From assembly GCF_006345805.1 (NCBI RefSeq), contig NC_042998.1:196602001-196666000 (forward strand): a stretch of 64,000 bases of DNA, read 5' to 3'. Numbering within the stretch: the stretch's first letter is position 1; the number at the start of each line of letters is the position of its first letter. The position numbers were made by a program, and so were the translations under genes. The stretch comes from Octopus sinensis. Taxonomy: Eukaryota. A model generated the notes under the pieces. That model did not search any database. It was given only the letters and a program-made list of their open reading frames with translations, and was not told the DNA's origin. Below, piece by piece: positions 10,756-50,200 of the stretch.

Positions 10756-10932
10756 CTTGAGGATGAGTCCATCTTTCAGCTGTTGTTTCATTCCTTGAAC
10801 TCCTTTGTGAATGATTTTTGTGATCATCTGTCTCAGTAGAGGCGCACTGTGTGGTATGAGTTACAGCTTGGCTAGGTCCAGATTCCAAAATATCAACATG
10901 CTGCTTATAACTTTTTAGACCATTCATTAAAG
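10756..10932 (-). CDS. CEP57: Module U1 exon B (177 nt, phase 1-1)
   Basis: Acceptor gatttctttccag|CT, donor CAAG|gtaaaa. Encodes (A)LMNGLKSYKQHVDILESGPSQAVTH...NETTAERWTHPQ. Confidence 0.88.
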
Positions 10933-10956
10933 CTGGAAAGAAATCAACAAAACATA

Positions 10957-11467
10957 CCGTAAATCCTCGAGTATAATCCGCATTTTCCCCAAAAATTTAA
11001 AGGTCAAAATCTCTAGTATGTACTATATACGAGGTTAAAAATGAAAAATATTTTCTAAGCAATGTCCAAGTCTCTATTTGCTGTCCGGCAATGTTTATTC
11101 AGACGCATTTTGTGATGTCGGGCGCGAAAATACCTTAAGCTAAGCCTAAAAGCAATGAAGTCATAAAAGAATCATCCATAACTTGCAGTAAGCAACATTT
11201 ATTAAACGTTATTACTGTTATTTCTTTATTTTCTGCGAACAAAATGCACAAAAAAGCTACACGTTTGTATTACGTTATATATACAATAATAATAAAGGAC
11301 GTTAGCGTATACATTTTTACAAACCAAGGACGTTATATAGACCTCCTTGACTCAAGTTAGAGAAGGGGTGCGTATTATACACAAGGTTTAGCGTTTTCAG
11401 AGGTACAGCTCCCTAAAAATCCACTGCGTATTATACACAAGGGCGAACTATACTCGAGGATTTACGG
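10957..11467. mobile_element. Tc1/mariner-pogo-type MITE
   Basis: Perfect 19-bp TIR ccgtaaatcctcgagtata / tatactcgaggatttacgg, flanked by TA. Confidence 0.85.
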
Positions 11468-12112
11468 TACGTTTGGATATAATATAATCTTTTCTACTTT
11501 AGGCGCAAGGCCCGAAATTTTGGGGGAGGGGGCCATGGTACTTAATTTATTGACCCTGAAAGAATGAAAGGCAAAGTTGACCATGACAGAATTTGAACTC
11601 AGAACGTAAAGACACACGAAATACACTAAGCATTTTGTCTGACATGCTAATGTTTCTGCCAACTTGCCACCTTAATAATAATCTTTTGTACTCCAGGCAC
11701 AACGCCCGAGACTTCGGGGAAGGGAGCCAGTCGATTAGATCGACCTCAGTATGCAACTGGTACTTAATTTATCGATCCCAAAAGGATGAACGGCAAAGTC
11801 AACCTTGGCAGAATTTGAACTTAGAACATAAAGACAGACGTGCCAAAATTTTTTTTGTGAATGAAATTGCCTGAAAATTCCCAGAAACTATTATTTTGTC
11901 CTAAATAACAACTGAAAAAAAATTTCATTGAAATCCGTTTGATAAAGATTGCATACGCATTAAGAACATGTTTCATTCTTTGATACAGATCATACACAAA
12001 TCACAATTTGTATCACAAGTATTTGTTTTACACCCTTACAAATTAAGGGTCAGTTTGAACAGACGATCAGCATGAATGGGTTAAAGTAATACAAAGATAG
12101 AGAATGGTTTAC

Positions 12113-12278
12113 CTTCTATGTTTGTTTCAGAAAAAGTGTAGACTGGTTTATCAGAAGTCTGATGATCATCGTTGATTGAAGGCTTTGTTGTTGGAAGTTT
12201 CTTGTAAGAACCAGTGCTGATATCAAAAATCTGATCTGAGTGTGGTCTGACATCACAACAGCTGGGAGGACTAAATAT
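12113..12278 (-). CDS. CEP57: Module U1 exon A (166 nt, phase 0-1)
   Basis: Acceptor ttttctttggtacag|ATA, donor ATAGAAG|gtaaacc. Encodes IFSPPSCC...DQIFDISTGSYKKLP...SDKPVYTFSETNIE. Confidence 0.88.
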
Positions 12279-12832
12279 CTGTACCAAAGAAAACAGAGAC
12301 TCATGTAACACAACAAAAACTGCACTGGAATAATAAGCCTTCCTTTCCTACATGCTTGGTCACATTTCGCTGAATGAAGGGAAACAACACAGAGCTGTGA
12401 GGACATTCTTCTGTCCTGCAAGGTACAAGGCAACCTCACTCATGTTGGTGCCACAATAAAATGTACCGAGTACAATCTCTAAAGCAGTTGACAGATTACA
12501 TTGTTGAGCAGACTCTTTTAGTCTTCTTAGGGGATGACTAAGTACGTTGGGGCCATAATAAAATGCACCCAGTACACTGTATAAAAAGTCTGGTATAAAG
12601 AAAAGGTTCCAGTGTAGAATTTATGCCAAAATAAAATCTACAGAGCAAGATATATATTTTGCACAATTTGTACTGAGTAATTCCATAATGAAGTTGAAAC
12701 AAACCTGAAAACACTTGGTCGTCTACTACTACTACTACTACCACCACCACCGTTGCCATGACTACTAGCGTTCCTAATCCTCAAATTGTCCCCAATCATG
12801 TCTAGGAGGGCAACTGCTCCTAATAAGTTTTT

Positions 12833-13210
12833 TATATATAAAGGATGGAAGTGGAAATAGTCCAGAAGTCTAAAACATTGCAATTTAAGAAGGAATTTAA
12901 TAAAAATGATTTTGAAAAAGAAGATATTACTGGTTTCAATGAATCTCATCAGTAAAAATTTTATTAAAAAAATGGAGTAAAAACAGTTTATCTTCCGTCT
13001 GGGGATCAAGAACATGTCTGGGGGTGGGGTCAAGAATGTCTTGATCCCCAGACAGATGACAAACTATTTTTACTTCAAATTTTAATAAGTTTTTACTGAT
13101 GAGATTCATCGAAACCAGTAATATCTTCTTTATATAATTTTTAAAATCATTTTTTATTAAATTCCTTCTTAAATTCTTGGACTTATTTCTGTGCTATTTC
13201 CACCTCCATC

Positions 13211-13220
<10 letters not shown>
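12833..13220. repeat. Fold-back element (about 180-bp arms, about 20-nt loop)
   Basis: aaggatgga...ctggggatcaagaacat / atgtcttgatccccag...tccatcctt, flanked by TA runs. Confidence 0.85.
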
Positions 13221-13278
<58 letters not shown>

Positions 13279-14882
13279 TCAGCAACAATTTAGATTCAAA
13301 TGAACATGGTACTTAATTTAGATGCACCAGAATTTTGTATGGTGTTATCCATAAAAATTTGCGAGGTGATTATAATAAAATGATGTAGTGCGAAACAATT
13401 GTACCAAATTACCGGAGTCATTCTTGTTGCTTATTTTTTAGTATATATATATATATACATACATATAGCTAGCTAGATGCAAGCCCATGATTCTGAGTTC
13501 AGTCCCACTGTGCAGCACCTTGGGCAAGAGTCTTCTATGCTCGCCCCAGGTCAATCAATGCCTTGTGAGTGAATTCGGAAGACAGAAATTATGTGGAAGT
13601 CTGTTGCATATATATGTGATTGTGTGTGTGTGTGTGTGTCTGTTACATTTTTGTGTCTGTTACATTTTTGTGTCTGCCCACTCTCCCCCTCACTGCTTCA
13701 CATCTGGTGTTAGTTGCTGATGTTCCCTTAACGTAGAGGTTCAGCAAAAGAGACAAACAAAATAAGGACCGAACTTAAAAAGAAAAAGAAGTATAGGAGT
13801 TGAGTTATTCAACTAAACCCTTTGAAGTGATGCCCCAGCATGGCCACAGTCCAATGACTGAAACATGTAAAAGAAGGTACCTTTTATCTTTTACTTTATC
13901 ACCATCATTTAACACCTGCCTTCCATGCTGGCATGGGTGAAACAGTTTGACAAGAGCTGGCCAGGCAGAAGCCTGCACCAAACTACTGTAACTGTTTCAG
14001 CAGGATGTCCTTAGACTGTGCCCATGCTGGAGGACACAAACACACCAACATTGGTTGTTAAATGGTGGGAGGGGGGGGGGGACAACCACAGACACAAATA
14101 CAATTCACACACTGTGCTTGAGGAGACCTATTGAGTCAAGTACATCAACATCAGAAATCAAATGGAAATTACATTTGTGATACCTGTGCCGGTGGCATGT
14201 AAAAAGCACCATCCGAACGTGGCCGATGTCAGTGCCACCTTGATTGGCTTCCGTGCTGTTGGCACGTAAAAAGCACGAACCGATTGTGACCATTGCCAGC
14301 CTCACATGGGATCTGTGTCGGTGGCATGTAAAAAGCACCATCCGAACGTGGCCGATGCCAGCGCCACCTTGACTGGCTTCTGTGCTGGTGACACGTAAAA
14401 GCACGAACCGATCATGGCCATTGCCAGCCTCGCATGGTACCTGTGTAGGTGGCATGTAAAACGCACCCACTACACTCACAGGGTGATTAGCATTAGGAAG
14501 GGCATCCAGCTGTAGAAACACTGGAGCCTGGCGCAGCCTCCTGGCTTCCCAGACCCCGGTCAAACCGTCCATCCCATGCTAGCATGGAAAACAGACGTTA
14601 AACGATGATGATGATATATATATACATATATATGTGTATAAATGATAGGCTTCTTACGGATTCTGTCTACTGAATCCACTCACAAGGTTTTGGTTAGCCT
14701 GGGACTATAGAAGACGCTTGCTCAAAGTGCTAAGCAGTAGGACTGAACCCAAAACCATGTGGCTGAGAAGCCAACTTCTTACCACACAGCCACTGGTTTC
14801 CAAAATATACATAATTACATGGGTTCTAAAACAGAGACAATTCTTGTAGCACAAATCAATGTTAAATCAACAGAATACTTAC

Positions 14883-14935
14883 TTGATCAGCCTTCTGTTT
14901 AGTGGCAGTCACTGATGTTCTTTTTCCTTCAGGTT
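14883..14935 (-). CDS. Module U2 exon C (53 nt, phase 1-0)
   Basis: Acceptor cttttatattacag|AA, donor CAA|gtaagtattc. Encodes (K)PEGKRTSVTATKQKADQ; homologous to the exon at 19476-19522. Confidence 0.8.
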
Positions 14936-14959
14936 CTGTAATATAAAAGTAGAGATTCA

Positions 14960-15340
14960 GGTGAGGTCAGGTGTGAGAGGCATGAGCTGTTGAGGCACTC
15001 TTGGGTCCTCCCAGGCAGCCTGTTAAACAGGGTCCCAGTCAGTCCCTATGTGCACAAAATATCTCCTCATCTGCCGTGATCATGTGGCATGTGGTCATCG
15101 ACACAAGCTGTCAGGCCAGCTGGAGGCTCAGTGAAGAGAACACAGTAAGCAGGGGCTAACTCAGAAAATTGACCAACATGGCCAAACAGTCTCTGAGCTG
15201 GCGTCCCTCTGTGTAGAGTCGAGGGTTGGATATGGAATCTGAAGAATGGTAACTCATAAGCCTGTAAAACATCTTTGTACCAAAGGAGTTCAAGCAATTC
15301 CTAAGGGTCCCAGACAGTGTCCAAGTCTCACAACTAAAGA
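14960..15340 (-). mobile_element. RTE-like LINE 3' fragment of a second family
   Basis: ORF 15067..15297 contains QRLFGHVGQFSELAPAY, resembling the RTE C-terminal RL.GHV motif. Confidence 0.55.
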
Positions 15341-16509
15341 GCAGGACAGGGATAAAGAAAAAAGAATGCTAAAGGGTTAATTAAGAAACATTCTTTGCAA
15401 ACCCATTTGTTAAGATATTATACAATAAATTCTTTTGAAAGTCATCCGAACGTGGCTGTTGCCAGCGCCGCCCCGACTGGCCTTGTACCGGTGGCACGTA
15501 AAAAGCACCATCCGATTGTGGCCGTTGCCAACCTCGCCTGGCCCCCGTGCCGGTGGCACGTAAAAGCACCCACTACACTCTCGGAGTGGTTGGCGTTAGG
15601 AAGGGCATCCAGCTGTAGAAACATTGCCAGATCAGACTGGAGCCTGGTGCAGTCTCCTGGCTTCCCAGACCCCAGTTGAACCATCCAACTCATGCTAACA
15701 TGGAAAGCGAGTGCTAAACGATGATGATGATGATATTATTGGGAAAACTGTTTCGGTTGAACAGCAGAGATGAGATTGAAGTTATTATTTGTCAATCACG
15801 ATATAAGAGAAATTTTTAAAGATCCCAAAGAAGCAGTTTTTAGGGTTTTTGTCTATGTCTGTAATGTAGCAATCATAAGAAACATTGGTGTCTCAGTTTG
15901 ATGTTATTAAATGTTCTGGCGAGACTACAGCAGCCTTTGAATGGAATAGATGGGACCACTACATATAAACAGAAGCGGTCTGATGTAGTGGGCAGTTTGT
16001 AGTTTGGTCTTTGAAGTCAAGGTACAGTTTACAGTTCAAGCTAGTCTGTTAGAAATATTGATTGTTGGTTCTTTGCGTGTCTGTTACTGCCATTGTTTCT
16101 ATTTTGTATTGTTATAACACTGTTACAGTGTATTCTTTATCTATTGTCAACAATATGAACCATACCACAATATTGGAGGCATAAGGATCATCATCATCGT
16201 TTAATGTCCGTTTTCCATGCTAGCATAAGTTGAACGGTTCAACCGGAGTCTGGGAAGCCAGGAGGCTGCGCCAGGCCCAGTCTGATCTGGCAGTGTTTCA
16301 ACAGCTGGATGCCCTTCCTAACGCCTGGCATCAACCACGTACGGAAGGTGCTTTTTACGTGCCAGGGGAGGCTGGCAACAGCCACGTTCGGTTGGTGGTT
16401 TTTACATGCCACTGACACGATAGCCAGTCAAGGCAGCGCTGGCATCGGCCACATATAACATTAAAACACTGAAAATGAAAAGAGTCAATTATCAACAGAA
16501 GCTACTTAC

Positions 16510-16683
16510 TACTCTGCTGAGGTGCTAAGCTTTCAAATGTCTCCTTCCCAGCCTTGTTTTTTGGGCAGTTTTTGTAAGTGTCTGCCTCAGAGAGGAGTTG
16601 CTTATTGCGACTCATTGCTAGATTAAGCTCAGATTCTAAATTCTTCATCTGCTTCTCAAAACTTCTCAAAGCAGTCATTAAAG
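16510..16683 (-). CDS. Module U2 exon B (174 nt, phase 1-1)
   Basis: Acceptor gatatctttccag|CT, donor AGTA|gtaagt. Encodes (A)LMTALRSFEKQMKNLESELNLAMSRNKQLLSEADTYKNCP...APQQS. Confidence 0.88.
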
Positions 16684-17270: not shown

Positions 17271-17302
<32 letters not shown>

Positions 17303-17333
17303 TAATGTAATACAATGATGAAGAACAATTTAC

Positions 17334-17490
17334 CTTGTGTTTTAGGTTTAGGAAAACCATAGACTGGTCTTTCAGAAAGTTGTTGAGAATCACTGGTCAG
17401 AGGCAGCTTCCTATAAGAACCGGTACTTATGTCATCAAATATCTGCTCTGAACCAGGTTGAAGATCAGAACTGTCAGAGAGATTAGCCAT
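17334..17490 (-). CDS. Module U2 exon A (157 nt, phase 0-1)
   Basis: Acceptor ttttctttggtacag|ATG (same as U1-A), donor CAAG|gtaaat. Encodes MANLSDSS...EQIFDDISTGSYRKLP...SERPVYGFPKPKTQ. Confidence 0.88.
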
Positions 17491-19475: not shown

Positions 19476-19522
19476 TTCAACCTGTTTAGCAGCAATCACT
19501 GATGACATCTTTTGTTGAGGTT
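19476..19522 (-). CDS. Module U3 exon C (47 nt, phase 1-0)
   Basis: Acceptor ccttttttattgcag|AA, donor GAA|gtaagtatt. Encodes (E)PQQKMSSVIAAKQVE. Confidence 0.8.
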
Positions 19523-20540: not shown

Positions 20541-20590
20541 CTTGAAGATGGGTCAATCTTTTAACTGTTGTTTCATTTTTCCCCTTTCTT
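20541..20590 (-). pseudogene. Orphan 3' half of an extra exon-B copy, abutting a LINE 3' end
   Basis: Encodes ...KGKNETTVKRLTHLQ G|gtaataag. The donor-side intron resembles that of U3-B (gtaataagcatattgattgataactg). The 5' half and native acceptor are absent, and a TAG lies upstream in this frame. Confidence 0.7.
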
Positions 20591-20591
20591 T

Positions 20592-21125
20592 CCTTTTCTA
20601 GTTTCAGCTAAAGAGCTGTGGCCCCGCTGTTTGCTTTGCTATACTTTCATTAAACCTCCTCTGATATATGGCATTTGGTGAATGAGGGAGTTTGATGCTG
20701 CTGCCCTCATCCGTGTTTCTTGCTGCAAGGTAGGTCCATCTGAAACTCTTGACAAAAGGAGATCCAGTTTTGTTGCAAAGATGCCTACATCTACCCCATG
20801 TAGGTCCCTCAGGCTTTGTGGAAGGATACCGAAGAGCTATAGGCCCTTGAAGCCCAAACTGTCGCAGTACCTGGTCCTGTATCCCGATGGCAATGCTAGA
20901 ATCTTTGGTACCATGCAGTGGTGCCTCGTTCTACTGTTTGTGCAACTGACACTGCCAAAGTTTGGTACAAGTTCCAGGATTTTTCTAGATGTATATTACT
21001 GCGTATCTTTCCTGCCTTTGTTTTAGGGAGTAGAGTCGTAACTTTTCAGTCTCTCCCGGTAGCTGACATGTAGCACTGAGACAATCTTCTTCATGTAGCT
21101 TTGCTCGATTGCTTGGAGTTCATGG
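20592..21125 (-). mobile_element. Non-RTE LINE 3' fragment
   Basis: Minus-strand YRERLK...SLKQRQERYAVIYI...LVPNFG...LGFKG-like post-RT sequence ending in the tail ggccacagctctttagctgaaactagaaaag. A related fragment lies at about 32095-32310 (+). Confidence 0.65.
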
Positions 21126-22584
21126 AAATTTTAACACTTATATCCATTTATCAGATCAAAATTACAGAGAATTTTCTGTTATCCAAAGTCTTATTTGGTT
21201 ATACACAAATGTATAAACCAAGGTTTTTTGAATAATGAAAGCCTTATGTTATTTTCTGTGCCCATGGCAACTTGGTGTCTATTGTTTATTGTTATATGAA
21301 ATGAAATCAATATATCGATTTCGTTTATATTGATTTGAATACTAGAAGAAAACTGCTAGTGTGTGTGCATATATATATATATATATATATACCGGAGTAA
21401 ACACATAAATGTGAAACAAGGTGGGAAAAAGAGTACTCAAATACCAGTGGTAGAGTAATATGCTTTACTTAAAGCAGCAGAAAATTCAACAAAACCTGTT
21501 ACTCTGAGTTTCCGAACGGCAACGAGAAACTCAGAGTAACAGGTTTTGTTGAATTTTCTGCTGCTTTAAATAAAGTATATATATATATCAGGGGTGACTC
21601 CAGGTCGTCAGCATCACTCGGGCTCATTACAGATTTTTCAGAGGACACATGCCTGTTCATACAATTTCACATTTTTCTGCTTTATTTCTAGCTCCAAATG
21701 GCTTATTTTTTTTTATACCTAGCACTATGTCTTTCTCCATTTCTAAGTTAAGATTTAAAATAAAGCAACCTTGCAAAACACAATTGATTTTTACACACAG
21801 ACGCACAGAATAACAGCAATCAAATAACAACAACAGAGATCTGACTGTCACCGACAAGAGATGCCAGTTAGTTTTTTACGCCTTCTAGGCTCATTCATAT
21901 TAACCTGAACTGCTGGATAAATTTTCATTCCCTTAAGATTGTTGAAGAACGGAAACTTTACATAGATTGGAATTTAAATATTAATCTCTATAGAAATTTG
22001 TTTCAAGAAAACATTGAATTTGAATTACTTTCAATTTTTACGGTTATTGATAACAACTCAGGCTGTAACTTCTGACCCCGAGTCAGGCGTGTGTAAACAA
22101 TGTTGAGAGAATGTCAGCCACGAATGATATTTTTTGACACAGGGCACCTCTAGGACGACCGCCAGACACTGAACGAAAATAAATGAACTGGAACCTGGAT
22201 CAATAAAAGGAGCTCCAGTTATTGGCTGCTGTTACATACTTGAAGTGTTGGTAGAAATTATATCAGCTTGCAAATACACGTACACTTTACTAAATTTATA
22301 CTCAGGCTAAGGCCGAACAGCCTGGGTGACAGTTGTCACTGATATATATATAAATATATATATATACACACACATACATATATAGGTCCGGCAGTCGCCA
22401 TAATAGATCGGTAGCCACTACACACATTTTTTTTCTCTCCTTGTTTTTTCTGTGTCCCTTTCTGTAGAAGAGCGTAGGCTCAAAACGTAAAAGACTTTTT
22501 CAATTCCTGGGTGTTATACTAATACACTTGTTTGTTTTCTACACCACCTGTCTTCATCTTTTGTTTTTTTTCGTAAACTCCCCC

Positions 22585-23893: not shown

Positions 23894-24067
23894 CTTGAGG
23901 ATGGGTCAATCCTTTGACTGTTGTATCATTTCCTGAATTGTCTTGGGAATAGTTTCCGTAAGCATCTGGCTCAGAGATGCAGTGTTTACTATGACTCATA
24001 GCTTGGCTATGATCAACTTCTTCATTTTCTAAATCTTCCTCAAAGCTTCTCAGAGCAGCTCGAAATT
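23894..24067 (-). CDS. Module U3 exon B (174 nt, phase 1-1)
   Basis: Acceptor (t)n-cag|AA, donor CAAG|gtaata. Encodes (E)FRAALRSFEEDLENEEVDHSQAMSH...NDTTVKGLTHPQ. Confidence 0.85.
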
Positions 24068-25562: not shown

Positions 25563-25632
25563 CTTGTACTTGATTTTCGAGAGAAGCGTCCAAAGGTATT
25601 TCAATGCTAGAACTACCTGAAAGACTAGACAT
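25563..25632 (-). CDS. Module U3 exon A (70 nt, phase 0-1), begins with ATG
   Basis: Acceptor ttgttttcttcgatacag|ATG, donor CAAG|gtaaatcattct. Encodes MSSLSGSSSIEIPLDASLENQVQ; both ends resemble U2-A, with an internal deletion. Confidence 0.75.
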
Positions 25633-25705: not shown

Positions 25706-25755
25706 CTTTTCAGAGCCAGAAAATTCTTCAGTCTTCACCAAACAATACCAAGAAT
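25706..25755 (-). CDS. Putative module U4 exon C (50 nt, phase 1-0)
   Basis: Acceptor gagatttttag|AT (weak), donor AAG|gtaagc. Encodes (D/N)SWYCLVKTEEFSGSEK. It is the only phase-compatible candidate I found between U4-B and U3-A, and has little similarity to the other C exons. Confidence 0.5.
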
Positions 25756-26772: not shown

Positions 26773-29700
26773 GCTTGAAGGATCAGGTAAAATATACCCT
26801 TATAAACGCAAAAAAAGTGGCCCATCCATAAAGGTATTTTACCTGATTACATAGCTATTCTTCTGCAATCAAGATTTTCTTCATTTCTAAGATGCCAACT
26901 CACTCAGTGCTTCAGGGTTTGTTCATAAAGATGTTCTAACAATCGAAAAAATATAAATACCTATTCATTGAGTTGCATTTATCAACTGTCCTAATACACA
27001 CACACACACACAAGGCATACCTACACATACCTGCGACTTTGTTTCCTCATAACTTTTAGAAAAATAGATATTTTTTAAAATGAAATCTTCTACAGATACC
27101 TCTCAGATGGTGTAGATTACTATAATATCGGAATTTAATGTGAAAAATACGTATGTGTACGTTGGGCACGTCTACATACATACTGAGTTACACAAATTTT
27201 TCGAAACTTCAGTTTCATTTTCTAGATACACGTGATGTGTATCAGTTATGTATTTTTACGCGCCCAACAAACTTTTTTCTATTCATATTGAATTCCGATA
27301 TAACTGTAATCTTCACCAACTAGAATATATTTAAAGAAAATTTCAGGAAAAAAAAAAGAAAACAAATTTCAGGAAGTTGAGAAAACAAAGAAACGTGGGA
27401 ATTTTCTGAAATTCTTCTCTCCACTCTCGAAAAAAATTTTTTTTTTCTCACAACAATTTCTGATATAACTGAAACAGGTATTCTTTCGGTTTGACTCGAC
27501 GATACGTTTTTGTGAAAATTCATTTTAAAATATCCATTTTTCTGAAAGTTATGAAGAAATAAAGTCGGAGACACATTAGTGGAGATATGCCTCTATATAA
27601 TATGTATTTCTTTACTACCCACAAGGGGCTAAACACAGAGGGGACAAACAAGGACAGACAAAGGGATTAAGTCGATTACATCGACCCCAGTGCGTAACTG
27701 GTACTTAATTTATCGACCCCGAAAGGATGAAAGGCAAAGTCGACCTCGGCCTATGCCTCTATATAATATGAGCTGAGAAAGGATTGAAAAATCGCTTTGG
27801 CCCCTGTTTGGCTGTGGATTTGTAATCCTTTTATATTGACATCACGCGAAAATGCTCCCACTACCCTTTATAAAGTGGTTGCAAAAACCAAATGACACGG
27901 AACAAGCACCAGTCTGCGACAGTAGTGGATGCTAATGGGAAATGATTGAAATTATGATGACCCGTCCAACCCATGCCAGCGTGGAAGACGCACATGAAAT
28001 GACGACGATCTCTGTTTACATACACAAGAAGGAACATAGGAACTCAGTGCTTCAAAGTTGTTAGTAAGAAAGTTTTTAAATTGCAACTGATTTTTCAGAG
28101 AGAGAAAAAAAGAAGAAAACGGCGGGAGAATTGAGGAAAAACAGAATATAAAATAATAATACGCCATAAGAAGGAGCAGATAAGGAAGATGGATGTAGTA
28201 AATGTTTCTATTGTGAATGTTGGGAATAATTTCATGATTGGAGACGATGTTTCCAAGGAGATTTCAAACCGAGCAAAGAATATAATAACAATACTTACAA
28301 TTAAGGTAGAATAAGGTAATTACTTATAAACTTTGTGTCTGGAATATAGGAATATGTTCATAGCGTCAAAATGTCGTATATTTGTCATTTCAATGAGAAA
28401 TTTAGTCCACATTTAGTCTAAATATGTTTTGCCAACGGAGGATATTAACAACATAACAACTTCACTGAAACTTATTTATTTACGCCTGTTGCTAAGTCGA
28501 TTACCTCCCCTCTCTTTCTTCGCTTCTCACATTTACCTCCCCTGATTATTAGCATCATTTTTGGCGCCATTTCGTTTCTAGGCCCCCAACTACAGGGAAA
28601 GACGTATTTTTCTTTGTCAAAAATATGTATTTTCCAGGTCCAAAACGGAAATTCTTCTCGTACATGGAAAGTCACAGTTTAATGAAATTTTTAAAACTTC
28701 AAACGATAAACTAATCAAACACCTTTAAATAACTGTTCCAATGGGTTTTCATTCATTTCAACGGTGTCAATAGCACCAATTTGAATTGAATCTCTCTAAT
28801 TATAAAGCTGAAGTTGTCTGTGTGTGGCAGGTTAGGTAGCCTTCAACTAACACTATCTTCTCCGAGACCCTGCAGCACAAGTTGACCAAAATTGAGAGCA
28901 TGATAGAAGGAGGTTTGCTCTTCCTTTCGTAGAAGAAAAAATTCAAATCAGACCATGTTAACACCAAAAATTACTTACATCAAAAAGGTGCTTTTTTTTC
29001 TATGAAAATCCCTATTTTTTACGATGTTTTGACTGCTGTGTCGTCATCTTTCGGTGTATTTCAACCAGAGTTTGATGACTTGAATAAAAATTCCCAAGAT
29101 AAATGTGTCTGTTAGAATAATTCCGTTGTTTACTTTCCACACTGAATGTCCATGAAAAGAATAAAAAATATGGAATTGGATGTGTCTTGGTGACAAAACA
29201 CATCACCTGCAGAACTGACGTCACAGGAACTAATTTAAATGAACGAACACTAATGAAAATGGGTCGTTTCTCGATTATGTCTGTTATATCCTTCCATACT
29301 TAAGGTTGCTGTTTGTATTACACAATAGGTTATGTGTTGCACGACAGTGAACATGGATTTTAAGCGGGAAAGGGAAGGCTTCTTTTGTGCGGTTTAATTA
29401 ATGAAATAAATATACAGTTATTTAAAATACGATAGGCATACAATACCTCAATATCATCATATTTGTTTTTTTCCATTCTAAACTGACTTGAACGATGTTT
29501 TAGGTACAGAGGCCCTCTCTGTTGGCAATTCCTTTAGTCGCCCCTTGCAATACGTAGATATATGGTGTGCCTGTTGAAAAACTCGGACCCGTTTGGCTTG
29601 GTATATAGGCTTTCAGGAAAATAAACGATGTTATACGAATATAAATACAAAAATACAATAATAATAATAACCGGACATAACAACAGGCTTCATTTCCACA

Positions 29701-31653
29701 CACGCCAGCTGAATTCAAATCGTCCCCAGTCGAAAGACGCCTGTTGTTATGCCCTGTTATTATTATTTTTATTGTATTTTTGTATTTATATTCGTGTAAC
29801 ATTGTCTGTTTTTCCATCCTTGTTTTCGTACACATTCGATGCTTTTTTCCAAGGAATCTAATGCTCTTAGTTTAGTTTTTTCCTTGGGGCTGGCCAGATT
29901 GGAGCAATCTCAAGATTAATCAGCCGAAATTGCGAGGATGATCCGGTTCTTGACTGAGGATAAAAGGCTTCGAATGACCTGTCCTTGTTTTTTAGTATCG
30001 TCTATCTGGATGTTTTGTTGTCCCTTTTTGTATCACCTAGCTGTCCAGATGTTTTGCGTTCTTGTCCCATTTTGTATTTTATATATATATCATCATATAT
30101 ATATATATATATATAGTGGTGTACATACACTTTGTTCTCATATATATATGTATATGTTTGTGTGTCTGTGTTTGTCCCCCACAACATCACCTGACAACCG
30201 ATGCTGGTGTGTTTACATCCCCATAACTTAGCGGTTTGGCAAAAGAGACCGATAGAATAAGTACTAGGGTTACAAAGAATAAGTCCTGGGGTCGATTTGC
30301 TCGACTAAAGGCAATGCTCCAGCATGGCCACAATCAAATGACTGAAACAAATAAAAGAATATTAAACATAACTTGCCCAGGAACTCTTTGATACCACCTC
30401 ATACATGGAAGGTACACGCGTCCATGGAATACTCAACCACTTGCACGTTAATTTCATGAGCAGGCTGGTTCCTTGATCAACTGAAACCCTCACCATTGTA
30501 ACCAAGGGAATGCCAGTTTTGTTTTTAATCATCAGGTGTGGCTGTGTGGTTAGGAGTTCATTTCCCTGATGTCGTCCGCTATAGTCTCGGGTTGATCAAA
30601 GTGGATTTGGTAGATGAAAACTGAAAGAAGCCTCTGTGTGGGTGTCTTTGAGTCTATGTTTGTCCCCACCCGACCACTTGACAACCGGTGTTGGTGGGTT
30701 TACAGCCCCATAACTTAGAGGTTCAGCAAAAGGAACTGATAAAAAAAATACTAGGCTTAAAAAGATCATGTACTGCGGTTGATCCACTTCGTCTAACAGT
30801 TCTAGTGACTGAAGCAAGCAACAGATAAAAGGGTAAAAGACCATTTAGGGTGTCAAACAGGATGGCAACAGAAATATAGCTGGAGTTATTGTTCCTCGGC
30901 TGTGATATAAAATATATTTTAAGAACGAATCGAAATCGAACCTCATCCAACGACTGGCACCCATGCCAACCTCCCTTCATTGGACACTAAACTCTGCTTG
31001 TGAAGACCTGTTGGGGCAAGTGAAATTGAAATTGAACCAAATCCTATGACTGGCACCCGGCCGTTGCCAGTGCCACTGGACTGGCTCTTGTGCAGGTGGC
31101 AAGTAAAGAAACACTGTTTCGACCCTGTGCTTGAGATGACCTATTGAGTCAAGTACATCAACATCAAAAATCAATGGAAATTGTAGTTGTGATACCTGTG
31201 CCGGTTGCATGTAAAAAACACCATCCAAACGTGGCCGATGCCAGTGCCACCTTGACTGGCTTCTGTGCTGGTGGCACGTATAAAGCACCAACCGATCATG
31301 GCCATTGCCAGTCTCGCCTGGCACCTATGCTGGTGGCACATAAAAAGCATCCACTACACTCATGAAGTGGTTGGCGTCCAACTATAGAAACTCTGCCAGA
31401 TCAAGATTGGAGCCTGGCGCAGCCATCTGGTTCACCAGTCCTCAGTCAAAATCATCCAACCCATGCTAGAATGGAAAGCGGACGTTAAATGATGATGATG
31501 ATTTTAAGAAGGAATTGAAATGAAGGTGTTTGGTGTTCAATTCCCTGTGTTTCTAACGCTGCAATTATCAAAATAATTGAGATTTCTTTTTCATGTTATA
31601 AAGAATTTACAAATCAAAAGTAAAAATACGTATTTATTAATTGCTGATATTAC

Positions 31654-31815
31654 TTTCCAGAAGCACCAGTCTTTCAGCTGTTCTTTCCTTCCTTGCGTTC
31701 TTTCATAAACGTTCTTTGAAAGCATCGAGTTCTTCATTATCAATCAAAGCTTGCCTATGTTTGGTTTTAGCATGTTTTAAATCTTCGACAAAGTTTTTGA
31801 GAAGATCTTCAAATT
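31654..31815 (-). CDS. Module U4 exon B (162 nt, phase 1-1) with an in-frame TGA at 31703-31705 (pseudo-exon or poison exon)
   Basis: Acceptor gctcatgtctgtccag|AA, donor GAAA|gtaata. Encodes (E)FEDLLKNFVEDLKHAKTKHRQALIDNEELDAFKERL*KNARKERTAERLVLLE; the frame continues past the stop and aligns to the other B exons. Confidence 0.7.
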
Positions 31816-34036: not shown

Positions 34037-34099
34037 GGTGGCTATTAAAGAAAACGTAGACAGTATATTAATGTAACACAATGTAAAAGTATGGCTTAC

Positions 34100-34151
34100 C
34101 AAGCACATTTTCTGAAAGAATGCTTTTATGGGGTGACACAGCAGGAAACTC
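34100..34151 (-). CDS. Module U4 exon A (52 nt, phase 0-1)
   Basis: Strong acceptor ctttttctgtcttctttgcttcag|GAG, donor TTG|gtaagc. Encodes EFPAVSPHKSILSENVL; the downstream intron start is homologous to those of U5-A and U6-A. Confidence 0.72.
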
Positions 34152-36215: not shown

Positions 36216-36253
36216 CTCTTCAGGGATAGAATAAAATGCTTCTTCTTCAGCTT
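36216..36253 (-). CDS. Module U5 exon C (38 nt, phase 1-0)
   Basis: Acceptor cttttatattacag|AA (identical to U2-C), donor GAG|gtaata. Encodes (E)AEEEAFYSIPEE. Confidence 0.75.
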
Positions 36254-38315: not shown

Positions 38316-39668
38316 TATAAATTTATGCAGATACACACACACATTGTGATACAGAGATGTGTTATCTGTTTCCCTACTCTGATTCCTTATAGTGTTATTA
38401 GTAAATTAATTTTGGTCTGTTTTATACACACACAAGTTCAATTAAAAATGCAGTAATATGCACAATTCTTCTCAACTCCAATTCTGTGATTTATTTCAGG
38501 TGAACATTAACCAATGATTCATTAAAAGATTCATTAGTCTGTTGTAGCTCTGGCTGAGGAGACACAACAATGTTGAAACACCAGGGTTCTCAAAGATCCC
38601 CGATGCTAATGAATCAAATGTGTTATGAAAGAAGAAGCAGTTCTCCAAATAATGAAATACAGCAGTGATTAGCATATTCATGTTCCTGTGATCAATGACA
38701 GGCCTGCCTGACTGGCTCCTGTACCGGTGGCACATAAAAAGCACCCACCACACTCTTGGAGTGGTTGGCGTTAGGAAGGGCATCTAGCTGTAAAAACTCT
38801 GCCAGATCAAGATTGGAGCCTGGTGCAGCTACTGGCTCTCCAGACCTCAGTCAAACCGTCCAACCCATGCTAGCATGGAAAGCAGACGTTAAATGATGAT
38901 GATGATGTGTTTCCCGAAATGTTAAATGTAAATATAATTATTGTCAAGCATAATCATTGACAACGTCACCTTGCTGGCACATGTGCCAGTGACATGTGTA
39001 AAACAACATTCGAGAGTGGTCGTTGCCAGTGCCGCTGGACTGGCTCCCATGCAGGTGGCACGTAAAAAACACCTTTTGACCGTGGTCGTTGCCAGTAGAA
39101 TGTAAAAAGCACCCACTACACTCTCAGAGTGGTTGGCATTAGGAAGGGCATCCAGCTGTAGAAACTTTGCCAGATCAGATTGGGGCCTTGTGCAGCCTCC
39201 TGGCTTCTCAGTCCTCAATCAAACTGTCCAACCCATGCCAGCATGGAAAGCGGATGTTAAATGATGATGATGATGATGAATTTACTGATTCTTGCAGTTC
39301 CCATGCACAGGATGAATTTTTAAGAAGTAACCGAAAAAAAAACCCATCTTTTGTTGCATTTTGTCCCTAATTAAGCAATTTTCAGATTAATTTGTTGTGA
39401 GAGGGGGTTTCCTTTTCATGTTTTATGTTACACTGCCCCTCCCCAAAGAAGCCATTTACAATAAATGCCATTACCGTGTGGTACATATACAACTGTTTGA
39501 TCCATCACATCTGAACGCTCTTCGAAATCAGACAGGCTTTCTTCATAATCTTTATCTCCTAAAAACAACTCTTCTTTCAATTCTGGAAGCACATCAACAA
39601 AAGAAATGTTTAGATATAAAGTTTAAAAGAAATCATTGTTAGATATTTAACACATTTTACAATAATGG

Positions 39669-39744
<76 letters not shown>

Positions 39745-40465: not shown

Positions 40466-40624
40466 CTGGTATATATCGTGTCCTATCCATTAGGCCCACT
40501 GTGGAAACGTCCCCTTCAGCTGCTAGATAAGACGAGTACCATTTACTTTGATTCACATTCCTCTTAAGTTCAGCTTCTTCTAATTCTAACTCTTCCTCAA
40601 AGCTTTTTATAGCATTTAGAAACT
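40466..40624 (-). CDS. Module U5 exon B (159 nt, phase 1-1)
   Basis: Acceptor gatgtcttttcag|AG, donor ATACCAG|gtaata. Encodes (E)FLNAIKSFEEELELEEAELKRNVNQSKWYSSYLAAEGDVSTVGLMDRTRYIP. Confidence 0.82.
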
Positions 40625-41544: not shown

Positions 41545-41597
41545 AAAGTAAATGTAGACGGTATATTAATGTAACATAAAGTAAATTTATGGTTTAC

Positions 41598-41775
41598 CTT
41601 GTATTTCAAGTTGAGTAGAAATGCTCAATCGGTTATCAGGAGCTGGCAAGTCTATAGTATGAAGCTGTTGAGAAAGTTCCAAAGAAGGTTCCGAAGGAGG
41701 CGCTCGGGAAGTTCTCACAGGATGTGCTCGAGAAGTTCTCACAGGTGGAGGTCTGAGACAACATAATAAACGATA
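41598..41775 (-). CDS. Module U5 exon A (178 nt, phase 0-1)
   Basis: Acceptor ttttccttcgtttatttcag|TAT, donor ATACAAG|gtaaacc. Encodes YRLLCCLRPPPVRTSRAHPVRTSRAPP...NRLSISTQLEIQ. Confidence 0.72.
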
Positions 41776-43388: not shown

Positions 43389-43432
43389 TCCCTTTGGAAT
43401 ACGGGGTAACATTGCCGCAATATCTTCAGGAT
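43389..43432 (-). CDS. Module U6 exon C (44 nt, phase 1-0)
   Basis: Acceptor ccccttttacattgcag|AT, donor GGA|gtaagtattct. Encodes (D)PEDIAAMLPRIPKG; downstream intron (43305-43350) resembles that of U5-C (36140-36190). Confidence 0.75.
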
Positions 43433-43962: not shown

Positions 43963-44010
43963 GACCACAATGTTTCGGCTGATTTACTCTCCAGCCTTCA
44001 TCAGGTGTCC
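43963..44010 (-). ncRNA. Decayed minimal hammerhead-ribozyme motif of a Penelope-like element
   Basis: Minus strand: GGACAC-CUGAUGA-aGGCUG(n10)CAGCC-GAAAC-AUU-GUG. The core boxes and stem II are intact; the ACGU palindrome reads ACAU. Confidence 0.55.
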
Positions 44011-44133
44011 TGGAAGAATTTTGAACCCAACCTCTATAACTTTCCATGAGCTTATAGTGTAATGGTTAAGAGCATGGGCTACTGACCCCAAGATACCGAC
44101 TTCAATTCCAAGCAGCGCCTTGAATAAATAATA

Positions 44134-44165
<32 letters not shown>

Positions 44166-46044
44166 AAAAATAATAATAATAAATAGAATAGGAAGCCAGA
44201 CATAGTTTTAATTGAGAAAGAAAACAAACTATGCTGGATCTTAGATATTTTAAAATTTACAGGAGGGGGGGTAACTTGAGGTGAGAAATTGATTGGGAGA
44301 CGTTTTGGGGCGCTACAGTGGTTGCTTTGCTGTGAAAATGGGGATTTTATTGATTTGGGGGGACACTTTGGGGTCTAGATTGGACACCTTTTGCCCGATT
44401 TCAATCAAATTTTCAACATGGTAAAGTGGAAACGGATTTGTAATTTAAGCGCGGGAAAATGGGTTCGAAATTTTGAAAATTAAGGCAAGATTTATGAAGT
44501 TGAAAAAAATTTCTCATTTTTATGTATTTTTGCCTTTTATTTTTTATTGTTTAAAGTTTTCATTTTTTCTTAAAGAAATTTACAGCTGCATGTAGCCCGT
44601 GTTTAGAGCTTTCATTTGCATGGTCAATCGTCGAACAATTCCCAAAATAATTACTAAATTTAACAAAGAAATCCACTTTCTTCTTATTTTTAATCGCTCA
44701 AATAGTGGCACGTACAAAAGGCAAATGTGCTTTCCGTTGTCACTGCCTGATAATTATGATTGATCTTTCAAAATATTTTCTTTCTCAACTTACTCAAGAT
44801 CTTTTGTTTTTTATAAATGGGAGAGAGATAGATAGAGAAAGACAGAGAGTAAGAGAAAGCGAGGGAGAGTCTGAGAGAAAGGAAGAGTAAGAGAGTGGGA
44901 AAGTGAGAGAGAAAAGAGAGAAAAACAAAGAGGGAGAATGTGGCGATAAGAAACAGAAAGGAAGCAACAGAAAGTAACAACCACACCCTCACCCGTGCGT
45001 AGAGCGGGTCACCTTAAGCTAGTAAGTTAATAGAAAGATAGAGCTGTCAGGGCTTCCCTCTAATTCTTTAGTGATAAATGTGATATGTTGTAAACCAAAT
45101 GACAGAGAGGCACTTAGCACTACACAATATTACCTAGCGCTGGAGGTGATCTCAAAATTGATTTTCTCTTCACTATATCCATCGAGGGTTTCAGGCGAGG
45201 TTCACGGCGGAGCACTGGTAAAATATAAATAAAATATACTTTTTAGATATAACCAGGTTGTTGTTTGCTGCTACACTGCAGGTAAAAATATTTGTTAAAC
45301 ATGCACATACATCTGCATAAATGATTAAAGTGAAGGTCATTTTTTTAAAGTCTGTATTCAAACGAGGTCTTTGCCAGTGCCGCTGGACTGGCCCCTGAGC
45401 AGGTGGCACGTAAAAAGCACCATTTGGGCGTGGCCATTGCCAGTACCACCAAACTGGCCCTCGTGCCGGTGGCACGTAAAAGCACCCACTACACTCTCGG
45501 AGTGGTTGGCGTTTGGAAGGGCATCGAGCTGTAGAAACTCTGCCAGATCAGATTGGAGCCTGATGCAGCCTCATGGCTTCCCAGACACCAGTCGAACTGT
45601 CCAACCCATGCTAGCATGGAAAACGGACGTTAAACGATGATGATGATGATGTCTTGTCTATATGTTGAAAGTCTCTCAAACACACACACACAAACAATCT
45701 CACTAAAATAACTAAATATATATTATATATTCATATAAAACGAAAAAATAAATATGCCCTTTAAAAGCCTAGCCAGGCTCATGGGCCCGGTTTCCCAGTT
45801 TCAATGGCGTATGTGTTCCCCAGCTGGATGGGACACCAGTCCATCGCAGCGTTACTCATTTTTGCCAGCTGAGTGGACTGGAGCAACATGAAAGGAGGTG
45901 TTTTGCTCAAGAACACAATGCATCATCCGGTCCAGGAATCGAAACCACAATCTTACGATCATGGTGCTGACACCCTAACCACTAAGCCACACGCCTCCAC
46001 ATATATTCATATAGTCACCCGTATTGAAAATCAGGGAATGACTC

Positions 46045-47118
46045 ACGAAGTGGTCATACCCAGTAACTGGTGTAGCAGCACCATAATCAACTGCTACAAA
46101 GGTAAAGGTGACGCCTTAGATAGAAATAATTACAGAGGTATCAAATTGTTGAATCAGGAGATGAAAGTTACAGAGAGGGTCACAGCCCAACTAATTAGGG
46201 ATAGGGTTACTCTAGATGAGCTGCAGTTTGGTTTTGTGTCAGGGAGAAGCACCACTGATGCTATATTTTTGGTAAGGTGTAGGAGAAATATACAGCCTAA
46301 GACAAACCTTTGTACTGGGCTTTTGTTGACTTGGAGAAAGCATTTGACAGGGTCCCTTGATCCCTTATCTGGTGATCAATGCAGAAACTAGGGATAAATG
46401 AATGGTTGGTAAGAGCTGTAGAACCCATGTATAGGGACACTACCAGTAAGGTGAGAGTTGGCAGCAAGTATGGCAAAGAATTCAGGGTACAAGTAGGGGT
46501 TCACCAAGGATCGGTCCTCAGCCTCCTTTTGTTCATCATAGTCCTCCAGGCAAAAACAGAGGAATTCAAGACAGGCTGCCCCTAGGAGTTTCTCTATGCT
46601 GACGATCTTGTTTTTATAGCTGAATCACTACCAGAACTAGAGAAGAAGTTCCAGGTACGGAAACAAGGTCTAGAATTAAATGGCCTAAGAGTTAACCAAA
46701 AACCAAAGTCTTAGTTAGTAGGAAGGCAGACAAATCACAAATCCCTTCAGTTAGATGGCCCTGCTTAATCTATAGAAAAGGCATAGGTAGAAACTCCATA
46801 AGATGCACCTGGTACATCCTATAAGCTATGAACATATAAGAGGTGTAGCAATATCAGGGCAAGGTTAAGAGGGACAATAACTTTTGTATGTGGAAGGTGC
46901 ACAGGTACAATAAACAGTGAAAATGTAGAGAAAACAGATGCCATCATCTGTCAGGTGAGTAAACTAGAGGTAGTAGACAGCTTCTGTTATCTGGGTGACC
47001 AAGTAAGTAGAGGAGGTGGATGCTCCAAGAGCATAGCTGCGAGAATAAGATTAGGCTGGGCAAAGTTCAAAGAGCTCCTACCTCTGCTGGTAACAAAGGA
47101 CCTTTCCTCAGAGGGAAG
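46045..47118 (+). mobile_element. Decayed RTE LINE reverse transcriptase region
   Basis: NYRGIKLL, FGFVSGRSTTDAIF, VGVHQGSVLS, LYADDL and VDSFCYLGD motifs with frameshifts. Confidence 0.88.
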
Positions 47119-47227
47119 GGCATATTGTATGATGCCTTTGTCAGGGGTTTTCTCTAATTCTCTAGTGATAAATGTGATATGTTGTAAACCAAATAAAAGA
47201 GAGGCTCTTAGCAATACATAACATTAC

Positions 47228-47281
47228 CTGGTATACTGCCCAAAGGTCTCGTTAAATCGAATTCTGCATCATCATCATCAT
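47228..47281 (-). CDS. Module U6 exon B, shortened (54 nt, phase 1-1)
   Basis: Acceptor ttatatattccag|AT, donor ATACCAG|gtaat (same end as U5-B). Encodes (D)DDDDAEFDLTRPLGSIP. Confidence 0.65.
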
Positions 47282-47971
47282 CTGGAATATATAAACAATA
47301 CATACCTTATAGATATGATTATAACGACATTTTAAAGCATTTATACTGAAACAGACATGGTGTCCTCCAAAAATGTATGCACACTTTAGAGGAATGCCAA
47401 TGAGAAATGTTCCAGAAGACTATGGATGTTGATGAGCTCCACAAAGGCACAGGAGTAGAGCAGGAGTGGCTGTGTGGTAAGTAGCTTGCTTACCAACCAC
47501 ATGGTTCGAGGTTCAGTCCCACTGCATGGCATCTTGGGCAAGTGTCTTCTACTATAGCCTCGGGCTGACCAAAGCCTTGTGAGTGGATTTGATAGATGGA
47601 AACTGAAAGAAGCCCGTCGAATATATGCATCATCATCATCGTTTAGCGTCTGCTTTCCATGCTAGCATGGGTTGGACGGTTCGACCGGGGTCTGGAAAGC
47701 CAGGAGGCTGCACCAGGCCCAGTCTGATCTGGCAATGTTTCTACGGCTGGATGCCCTTCCTAACGCCAACCACTCCATGAGTGTAGTGAGTGCTTTTTAC
47801 GTGTCACCGGCACAGGTGCCAGACGAGGCTGGCAAATGGCCATGATCGGATGGTGCTTTTTACGTGCCACCAGTATGGAGGCCAGGCGAGGCTGGCAACG
47901 GCCACGATCGGATGCTGCTTTTTACGTGCCACTGGCATGGAGGCAGTCGGGGTGGCGCTAGGAAGTCGGGG

Positions 47972-48011
<40 letters not shown>

Positions 48012-48410
48012 ATGTCTATGTTTGTCCCCCCAACATAGCTTGATAACCGATGCTGGTGTGTTTGCGTCCCCATAACTTAGCGGTAGAATAAGTACTAGGC
48101 TTACAAAGAATAAGTCCTGGGGTCAATTTGTTCGACTAAAGGCGGTGCTCCAGCATGGCCGCAGTCAAATGACTGAAACAAGTAAAAGAGAGGAAGAGAA
48201 GTCAAGAAAGGATACTAAGAATGTATTGAGAAACTAGTCACGAGACAGGAATTTAGAAATCAAGCATTCATCGCATTTTATAAAGTTGTCGTTAGAAAAG
48301 TTGCATTTCAAGAAATGATTATTGCTTTTAATAAAAACGATCTGAGGAATTTTTCACTGGTCTGGATTTGGTTACAGTTGCAGGCAGGCTTGTAAGACAG
48401 GTATGATCAA

Positions 48411-48646
48411 GGCGGCAAGCTGGCAGAAACGTTAGCACGCCGGGCGAAATGCTTAGCGGTATTTCGTCTGCCGTTAGGTTGTGAGTTCAGATTTCGCCGA
48501 GGTCGACTTTACCTTTCATCCTTTCGGGGTCGATTAAATAAGTACCAGTTACGCACTGGGGTCGATGTAATCCGTCGACTTAATACCTATGTCTGTCCTT
48601 GTTTGTCCCCTCTATGTTTAGCCCCTTGTGGGTAATAAAGAAATAG
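48411..48646 (+). mobile_element. tRNA-derived SINE with a Meta-domain-like centre, representative copy
   Basis: Head ggcggcaagctggcagaaacgttagc, centre gtcgactttacctttcatcctttcggggtcgat, tail aaagaaat; TSD ggtatgatc. Other copies at 3490-3690, 16856-17087, 27605-27751, 35470-36110, 53600-54005, 56555-56790, 58240-58560. The Meta assignment is from memory. Confidence 0.85.
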
Positions 48647-50130
48647 GTATGATCCTTGTAAAACAGGTTTGATCCATTATGATCCTTCAGTGGGTGATTC
48701 TCTGCAGGTTTTTGCTTTAACATCAATTACTTTGACACTCAAATCAGAGATCAATTGAGAAGTTTCCAGAAATTCCCAGTGCAAGGCCTGATTTAGTTCA
48801 GATAGTAGGGTAAGACAGAGATCAGCAGCTGAAAGGATCAATTATGTAGTTGAATCATTTCTCAGCATTCCAGAGTCCAGAATTTTAATGCATATGTTTT
48901 TGGCTTGCCATTGTCAGGGAGTTAGAGGTGCATTAAATAAAAACCTGATGTTTATTGCAATCAACCCATTGTATCAAAGCAAAAAAGAAAAAAATGAGTT
49001 ATTGGCTTTCATACAAAAGATGGCTGATGTGATCATCAAGGCATCACTCAGTCTTAGAAAAGAGACCTGTTTTTATGGTATATTTCATCCACACATGAAG
49101 CCGTGACAATTTTGTTCCATCTAACCAGCCCACCTATGTGTACCTTTCCTTCATTGGACACTAAACTCTGCTTGCGAAGACCTGTTGAGGCAAAGAGGAA
49201 TTCCCATGGGAAACCTGTCTTAAATTTCTCTGTTATTGTCTGGAAGACTGTTACCAAAACCCTTATAAACTCTCACCAGCATACTAAATTAATAGCTGTA
49301 CTTATTGTTAACTAGCATCTGTGCTAGTGGAGTGCTAAGAACACCATCCAAGTGTGATCATTGCCAGAGCAGCTGACTGGCTTCCATGCCGGTGGCACGT
49401 AAAAATCACCATTCAAGCATGATTATTACCAGTGTCACCTTACTGGTACTTGTGCTGGTGGCACGAGAAAAAACGTTCGAGCGAGGTTGTTGCCAGTGCC
49501 GCTAACTGGCTCCTGTGCAGGTGGCCGTTGCCAGTACCACCTGACTGGCCCTCGTGTTGGTGGCATGTAAAAGCACCCATTACACTCTCGGAGTCGTTGG
49601 CATTAGGAAGGGCATCCTGCTGTAGAAACTCTGCCAGATCAGGATTGGAGCCTGGTGCAGCCATCTGATTCGCCAGTCCTCAGTCAAATCATCCAACTCA
49701 TGCTAGCATGGAAAGCGGATGTTAAATGATGGTGATGATGATGATAACCATCCATATAATTGAAACAAAGGAGAACCAATGTCTTAGTATAAAATATGTG
49801 TGCATGTGTCCATGTGTGTTTGTATGTGAGTGTGTGTGCATGCATATGTGTGTGAGTGTGTGCATGTGTGTGTGAGTGTGTGCGTGTGTGCATGAGTGTG
49901 TGTGTGTGTGTGTGCGTGTGTGCACATGTGTGTGTGAGTGTGTGCATGTGTTCATGTATATAGATGTATATGTACAAAAGTGTGTAATTGTTTGTGTGAT
50001 CATTATGGAATCAAAAGAACGATGGGTTTATCCTATCGTTAGTCAATGAATGAAATAAAATAGAAAGATGTCTACCAAAGTAAATGTAGACAGTACAATA
50101 ATGAAAATATAATGGAAAAGAATGGTTTAC

Positions 50131-50200
50131 CTTCTATCTTAACTGTGGGAGTAGCACCATGCAAATCGTCGTCTTCGAAATCAGCATAATCATAAGGGGA
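50131..50200 (-). CDS. Module U6 exon A (70 nt, phase 0-1)
   Basis: Acceptor tttttctgcttcctttgctccag|TCC, donor ATAGAAG|gtaaaccattct (as in U1-A). Encodes SPYDYADFEDDDLHGATPTVKIE. Confidence 0.75.

Follow-up and report, generated by a model that had tools for sequence, protein, structure and literature searches.

Tandemly repeated exons that differ widely in length and never leave their reading phase raise the question of what holds them in frame. Such an array lies in a stretch of 64,000 nucleotides (nt) of the Octopus sinensis genome (assembly GCF_006345805.1, contig NC_042998.1, positions 196,602,001 to 196,666,000; hereafter referred to as the window), where a reading made from the letters alone (the sequence-only reading) had placed 17 exons of three families, A, B and C, in six units (U1 to U6) running from position 50200 to position 10756 of the minus strand. 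The array was taken there for a single translated, frame-locked series of cassettes from which B exons, C+A pairs or whole triplets could be dropped to set the number of repeats. The analysis reported here identifies the locus as LOC115227230, a centrosomal gene of the Cep57/Cep57L1-like kind, and favours a simpler answer, held with a probability of about 0.8: a block of three exons was duplicated in tandem and the resulting array was split into a short upstream gene and a Cep57-like gene.

The window is rich in short interspersed elements (SINEs), which swamped an all-against-all comparison of the open reading frames (ORFs) in six frames; this noise was overcome by filtering out multi-copy sequence according to self-BLAST copy number, which left the low-copy direct repeats between 10.7 and 50.2 kb. 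The translations of these repeats are sensible on the minus strand only, and the exons were picked on that strand at obvious AG/GT sites. In a protein search the joined translation of the array matched the product of LOC115227230 at 100% identity, with XP_036356561.1 of O. sinensis being 100% identical to the window, and the same search found the 'centrosomal protein cep57l1-like' of O. bimaculoides; further Cep57-like isoforms are present in O. vulgaris. Most of the locus is contained in the window, with its 3' end lying beyond position 1.

The exon lengths, the phase classes and the limits of the array were all reproduced. The lengths are 1 mod 3 throughout the A family (70, 178, 52, 70, 157 and 166 nt), 0 mod 3 in the B family (54, 159, 162, 174, 174 and 177 nt) and 2 mod 3 among the exons listed as C (44, 38, 50, 47 and 53 nt). 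Annotated proteins of three Octopus species confirm 16 of the 17 exons base for base, U4-A to U6-B matching XP_036356560/61 of O. sinensis and the Cep57-like isoforms of O. bimaculoides and O. vulgaris, and U1-A to U3-B matching CAI9716917.1 of O. vulgaris. The acceptor of U5-A and the donor of U2-B, for which phase had been used to choose among candidate sites, are both confirmed in this way. The classes hold in all verified copies, including two B-type exons (X45 and X39) that had been overlooked, and the unit length is a multiple of three; with at least 13 independent matches to a one-in-three class, the regularity cannot be due to chance. The one exon of the inventory that proved spurious is the 50-nt 'C' (25755-25706), which is present in no model, does not align with the C exons, carries an A-type donor and is a partial duplicate of A situated 73 nt upstream of U4-A. 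As many as 15 stop-free 50-nt AG..GT candidates occur in its interval, so that its selection was a product of the phase-based choice. No true C-type exon with the C acceptor consensus was found in the 6-kb interval between U3-B and U4-A.

The concatenated array does not constitute one ORF, since it is broken by a single in-frame stop, a TGA in U3-B (31705-31703) that is conserved in O. vulgaris and that had also been overlooked. In the O. vulgaris locus a separate gene on the same strand lies directly upstream and ends exactly at this TGA. Its two products, CAI9716917.1 (311 amino acids, aa) and CAI9716918.1 (284 aa), recovered in a second protein search, are both annotated as 'hypothetical predicted protein', in an annotation that combined Iso-Seq, RNA-seq, PASA, ab initio predictions and EVM (PMC10700109). 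The 311-aa product proceeds from a short ATG exon through U1-A, U1-B, X45, U1-C, U2-A, U2-B, X39, U2-C and U3-A to the stop in U3-B and keeps the originally proposed frame throughout; EFLNAIKSFEEELELEEAELK is an example of a peptide unique to U1-A to U3-B. The contexts of their acceptors and donors place both X45 and X39 in the B family, and X45 is a duplicate of U1-B, with which it has the acceptor, the donor and the downstream intron in common. Of the exons of the upstream ORF, U1-A is the first to fall within the window. The ATG exon (MACCGATSA), located ~17 kb upstream of U1-A in O. vulgaris, is absent from the window, lies beyond position 64000 and would fall near 68 kb in window coordinates. 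The missing C-type exon between U3-B and U4-A fits an upstream ORF that ends in U3-B. As exon and intron homology shows, the upstream ORF is a paralogue of the N-terminal module only, and its protein is probably made. Thus, the phases of the proposed array are real, and its single reading frame is not, given the conserved TGA and the start of the Cep57-like coding sequence (CDS) at U4-A. In O. vulgaris, a gene of 530 aa on the opposite strand (positions 1-9523 of the sequence designated L004) terminates at a distance of 478 nt from the upstream gene's ATG exon, and the two may share a bidirectional promoter.

The CDS of the downstream gene begins, in all three Octopus species, at the first-codon ATG of U4-A, further downstream, or in a short extension from a different 5' exon, and when the proteins are mapped to the window, U4-A through U6-B and X7 are confirmed base for base, together with three further exons. 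The alternative 5' exon at 28505..28558 is orthologous in O. bimaculoides and O. vulgaris. The O. sinensis protein matches both Pfam domains of the family above their cut-offs, Cep57_CLD (PF14073) with 52.9 bits against 28, at residues 315-493 of isoform X1, and Cep57_MT_bd (PF06657) with 39.6 bits against 31.3, and its C-terminal domain matches the human Cep57 chains 4L0R and 8IBH of the PDB (phmmer, E about 3e-8). These matches identify the gene from U4 onward as a member of the Cep57 family. An exhaustive HMMER search recovered 79 relatives, mostly of 470-530 aa, in which the N-terminal matches begin at U6-A; those named include the Cep57 of oyster, Lingula, shark and marsupials. The orthologue of Argonauta hians, of 544 aa, has two units.

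When A+B of every unit were aligned with the N-termini of the relatives, all units could be placed on the N-terminus of vertebrate, oyster, brachiopod and a second mollusc-like Cep57, in the region spanning the human PINC motif. The A peptides carry the common motif SY..KPF.N.D...KPV..FPE.N, and the B peptides form a helix A[IL]..AL[KR].. at the position of human PINC, in which the L is nearly invariant and the K/R of AL[KR] is conserved; U5-B alone matches positions 1-55 of the Cep57_CLD profile, at no better than E = 0.013. PINC comprises human residues 68-103, at the start of the first coiled coil, and is needed for centriolar localisation and for binding to the PACT domain of pericentrin (PMC6389942, PMC11321043). 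The extra PINC-like copies are predicted by this similarity to bind pericentrin. Self-BLAST pairs and family alignments establish the A, B and C families as paralogous, including their acceptor and donor contexts and the adjoining intron. The C exons and X7 have the donor and the downstream intron in common, and the C exons appear to be shortened copies of X7. Between O. sinensis and O. bimaculoides, U6-B, which is contiguous with the rest of the centrosome-localisation domain (CLD), changes fast and retains 66% amino-acid identity, and U5-B retains 95%, which suggests that the functional PINC-like motif may have shifted to the second-last unit (U5-B).

Selection on the reading frame was assessed in both ORFs. 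The ten upstream exons in the window provide 298 open codons before the TGA, as against 23 and 32 stops in the two remaining frames; every one of 20,000 shuffles of the upstream ORF contained a stop, and the probability of a stop-free frame, estimated from composition, is about 2e-9. Between O. sinensis and O. vulgaris the ratio of non-synonymous to synonymous substitution rates (dN/dS) is 0.35 upstream (13.5 synonymous and 17.5 non-synonymous changes; binomial p about 0.01) and 0.39 from U4-A to X7. The single exon indel between these two species, in U2-A, measures 12 nt and is in frame, as against 18 indels in the 150-nt intron flanks, 14 of which have lengths not divisible by three; the exons were expected to show about 4.5 frameshifting indels and show none. 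U4-U6 are free of indels in O. bimaculoides. The data support purifying selection on both ORFs and upstream units that are coding rather than debris. The claims made from the letters alone, that the frame is under purifying selection and that the upstream units are translated, are supported in this respect by the open codons, the O. vulgaris annotation and the dN/dS values, and the comparison of indels with a sister species, proposed at that time, disclosed no frameshift in the exons.

The coordinates of the exons and associated features are compiled below.

Table. Features of the array and of the Cep57-like gene, in window coordinates; all lie on the minus strand.
Feature	Position	Length (nt)	Phase	Remarks
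U1-A	50131..50200	70	0 to 1	residues 10-32 of the O. vulgaris 311-aa protein
U1-B	47228..47281	54	1-1	
X45	45134..45214	81	1-1	B-type
U1-C	43389..43432	44	1 to 0	
U2-A	41598..41775	178		O. vulgaris copy 12 nt longer, in frame
U2-B	40466..40624	159		PINC-like motif (EFLNAIKSFEEELE); donor as in the O. vulgaris model
X39	39475..39582	108	1-1	B-type; last 12 nt (ATG at 39486) open the CDS of O. sinensis isoform X1, in another frame
U2-C	36216..36253	38		also in isoform X1, different frame
U3-A	34100..34151	52		also in isoform X1, different frame, joined directly to U4-A
U3-B	31654..31815	162		length between homologous splice sites; contains the in-frame TGA
Alternative 5' exon of the Cep57-like gene	28505..28558			coding part of O. 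vulgaris isoform MMLIIRGGKCEKRRKRGE; phase-0 donor leading to U4-A
50-nt 'C'	25706..25755	50		rejected; see text
U4-A	25563..25632	70		first codon ATG (25632-25630), the annotated Cep57-like start
U4-B	23894..24067	174		PINC-like copy
B-type 3' fragment	20541..20597			intact donor GTAATAAG, weak acceptor; in no annotated CDS
U4-C	19476..19522	47		
U5-A	17334..17490	157		opens with an ATG, the start of O. bimaculoides isoform X3
U5-B	16510..16683	174		best-preserved PINC-like copy
U5-C	14883..14935	53		
U6-A	12113..12278	166		Cep57 N-terminal motif SY..KP.IN.D...DKPV..F.E.N
U6-B	10756..10932	177		Pfam Cep57_CLD match begins at the first residue
X7	9773..10020	248	1 to 0	2 mod 3; continues the CLD; C-type donor
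Further Cep57-like coding exons	~7822-7748, 6058-5804, 1409-1257			limits of tblastn high-scoring segment pairs; include the microtubule-binding domain
Conserved intron element past A donors	50086-50130, 41553-41597, 34055-34099, 17289-17333, 12068-12112			

The proposed skipping of cassettes was examined by a comparison of 15 annotated proteins from O. sinensis, O. vulgaris and O. bimaculoides, which represent annotation and not raw transcripts. No internal B exon, C+A pair or triplet is missing from any of the 15; these proteins differ only in their 5' starts, their 3' ends, one acceptor shift of 6 nt and one intron retention, and the combinatorial control of repeat number is thus not borne out. 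The only documented non-linear join is the A-to-A junction of U3-A with U4-A in isoform X1 of O. sinensis, a predicted model and not a cDNA, whose N-terminus is rebuilt exactly by X39 (from the ATG at 39486), U2-C, U3-A and U4-A. U2-C and U3-A are read there in a frame other than the one originally proposed, and the upstream frame, carried on into U4-A, meets a stop after two codons. In-frame drops are arithmetically possible because of the inherited intron phases and are not evidence of regulation. No docking and selector pairing of the Dscam kind was found, as the window holds no reverse complement of the conserved element past the A donors, and the energies of duplexes between A introns and B introns fall within the shuffled range.

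Two observations concern the splice sites themselves. The first ~45 nt of the intron past the A donors (GTAAACCATTCT..TTGTATTACATTAATATAC) are better conserved between old paralogues than the bodies of the A exons. Isoform X2 of O. sinensis has two extra residues, VQ, which map to the 6 nt immediately before the acceptor of U6-A (12279-12284, minus strand) and which would need a TG and not an AG as 3' splice site, unless they are a quirk of the annotation.

The favoured explanation builds on the exon structure, the phases, the two ORFs, their constraint and the Cep57 homology set out above. In octopods, the 5' end of Cep57 would have undergone several tandem duplications of an ancestral A-B-X7 block. 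Of the three kinds of exon, A (phase 0 to 1) encodes the Cep57 N-terminal motif, B (1-1) encodes the PINC-like start of the CLD, and C (phase 1 to 0) looks like a shortened copy of the next CLD exon. Each copy would have inherited the parental intron phases, and purifying selection on its ORF would have let only in-frame changes of length survive; because inherited phases and selection on the ORF account for the apparent frame lock, a special mechanism is unnecessary. The upstream translation unit would extend from the ATG exon outside the window to the TGA of U3-B and encode ~300 aa of diverged N-terminal modules without the microtubule-binding domain. The downstream unit begins with the alternative 5' exon near 28.5 kb and continues through U4-A to U6-B, X7 and the rest of Cep57, with three N-terminal modules, and read-through transcripts, modelled in O. 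sinensis as isoform X1, join upstream exons to U4-A without continuing the upstream frame. The duplicated block may once have been A-B-B'-C, because U1 and U2 hold two B-type exons before C and a B-type 3' fragment persists at 20541-20597, between U4-B and U4-C, where it is 92% conserved in O. bimaculoides. A functional reading that goes further is unlikely: besides bringing three copies of the pericentrin-anchoring, PINC-like module into one protein, octopods would have gained in the upstream gene a product of diverged copies of it which, for want of the microtubule-binding domain, could compete for or regulate pericentrin docking at centrioles, and read-through or in-frame joins such as U3-A to U4-B might tune the number of modules in an isoform.

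Two other explanations of the array have to be weighed against duplication and splitting. That U1-U6 form one translated, frame-locked array in which regulated skipping of B, C+A or triplets sets the repeat number is compatible with all the phases, and a hypothetical join of U3-A to U4-B or to U4-C would be in frame and bypass the stop; the isoform X1 model does join upstream exons to U4-A, and the start of O. bimaculoides isoform X3 at the ATG of U5-A implies that some transcripts lack a usable U4-A. The TGA that such an array would have to avoid is nevertheless conserved in O. vulgaris, where an annotated gene terminates at it, the 50-nt exon required to link U3 with U4 is neither a C homologue nor part of any model, and the one documented junction across the units joins A to A and breaks the upstream frame. 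Together with the 15 proteins that all retain their internal units and the lack of Dscam-like complementary elements in the introns, this makes the explanation very improbable. It is also improbable that U1-U3 are decaying relics, serving as non-coding exons or exons of the 5' untranslated region in read-through transcripts, with the O. vulgaris protein an artefact of ORF calling and the phase preserved merely because too little time has passed. Isoform X1 does place U2-C and U3-A, read in another frame, ahead of the main ATG as a leader, the divergence of exons and introns is close, and the upstream product has no domain match and, among 5.8 billion clusters, not one homologue beyond O. vulgaris. 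Relics of recent origin are, on the other side, hard to reconcile with units whose peptides are so old as to be barely alignable to U4-U6 and yet keep 298 codons open where the other frames have accumulated stops, with the dN/dS of 0.35, or with exons that have sustained one 12-nt indel and no frameshift. In addition, two isoforms of the upstream gene are annotated, and the alternative forms of that pipeline derive from PASA transcript assemblies (PMC10700109).

Several points weigh against duplication and splitting into two genes. The upstream dN/dS is calculated from just 31 substitutions, and the mismatch of the upstream exons (3.3%) differs only slightly from that of the flanking introns (4.2%). 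The 311-aa protein has no Cep57 match in Pfam even at E values up to 10, where only sub-threshold noise is seen, and the annotations of O. sinensis and O. bimaculoides contain no protein for the upstream gene, whose ATG exon, outside the window, is placed from the O. vulgaris gene. Transcript support consists of gene models (NCBI for O. sinensis; EVM/PASA with Iso-Seq and RNA-seq for O. vulgaris, PMC10700109) and not of direct reads or peptides. The flank of the O. bimaculoides locus holds assembly gaps and unrelated sequence and yielded no age for U1-U3: it is collinear with the window no further than position 28786, no more than about 12% of it can be matched to the O. vulgaris locus, and the 9.75 kb upstream of the first exon contain N gaps, a fragment of a mariner element and three large ORFs of unrelated sequence. 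These three ORFs (454, 855 and 302 aa) lie on the same strand at 154-4862 of the O. bimaculoides sequence designated L001 and are missing from both the O. sinensis and the O. vulgaris locus; they are followed by the mariner-like transposase fragment (8036-8545) and two N gaps.

Two further features of the window were recorded outside the exons. A direct repeat of 99% identity (62447-62753 and 63695-64000), with its copies 1.25 kb apart, lies in the first intron of the upstream gene and stems from a very recent duplication or else from an error of assembly. Introns also contain long imperfect palindromes, which are 80-88% self-complementary and reach about 400 nt (12833-13221, 1505-1732, 21458-21580 and 29618-29812); they look like miniature inverted-repeat transposable elements or foldback elements.

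The structural weight of these results is small, as both genes are already in the public annotation and block-duplicated coding exons are expected to keep their phases. The useful yield lies in the corrections, namely two ORFs in place of one, one spurious exon, two missed exons and a stop codon. PINC is a short motif that anchors pericentrin via Cep57 and via functional analogues in flies and yeasts, and three tandem PINC-like copies, accompanied by a stand-alone gene made up of diverged N-terminal modules only, constitute a natural experiment on the valency of the pericentrin anchor. They also illustrate clearly how truncating duplication gives rise to a new gene.

Comparison with known systems places the locus within a familiar range. 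The downstream gene resembles Cep57/Cep57L1 in having both Pfam domains above the cut-off, the match to the human structures, and A+B peptides that align with the N-terminal motif and the PINC region; its relatives, however, have one N-terminal module and about 470-530 aa, whereas Octopus has three modules and an extra upstream ORF, and Argonauta two modules. Tandem duplications of multi-exon blocks are known from the two-exon kringle IV-2 of LPA, the triplicated exon block of nebulin and the Olduvai doublets and triplets of NBPF. The octopus array shares with these the same order and phases of exons, a unit that is a multiple of three and an adjoining intron common to the copies, and differs from them in that its copies are old, its A exons range from 52 to 178 nt and the array is cut by a stop and an internal start. 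Phase-symmetric exons for disordered or coiled segments favour duplication and alternative splicing (PMC3632108). The B exons conform to this pattern, being symmetric (1-1), of low complexity or coiled-coil character and tolerant of large in-frame changes in length; A and C, on the contrary, are asymmetric and frame-neutral only as a C+A pair, and alternative inclusion is not documented for the array. Isoform X1, in which X39, U2-C and U3-A are joined to the first coding exon of the downstream gene, recalls conjoined gene pairs, except that this join does not fuse the ORFs and the upstream exons act as a leader. The locus thus shows an event of a known kind in a gene for which it has apparently not been reported.

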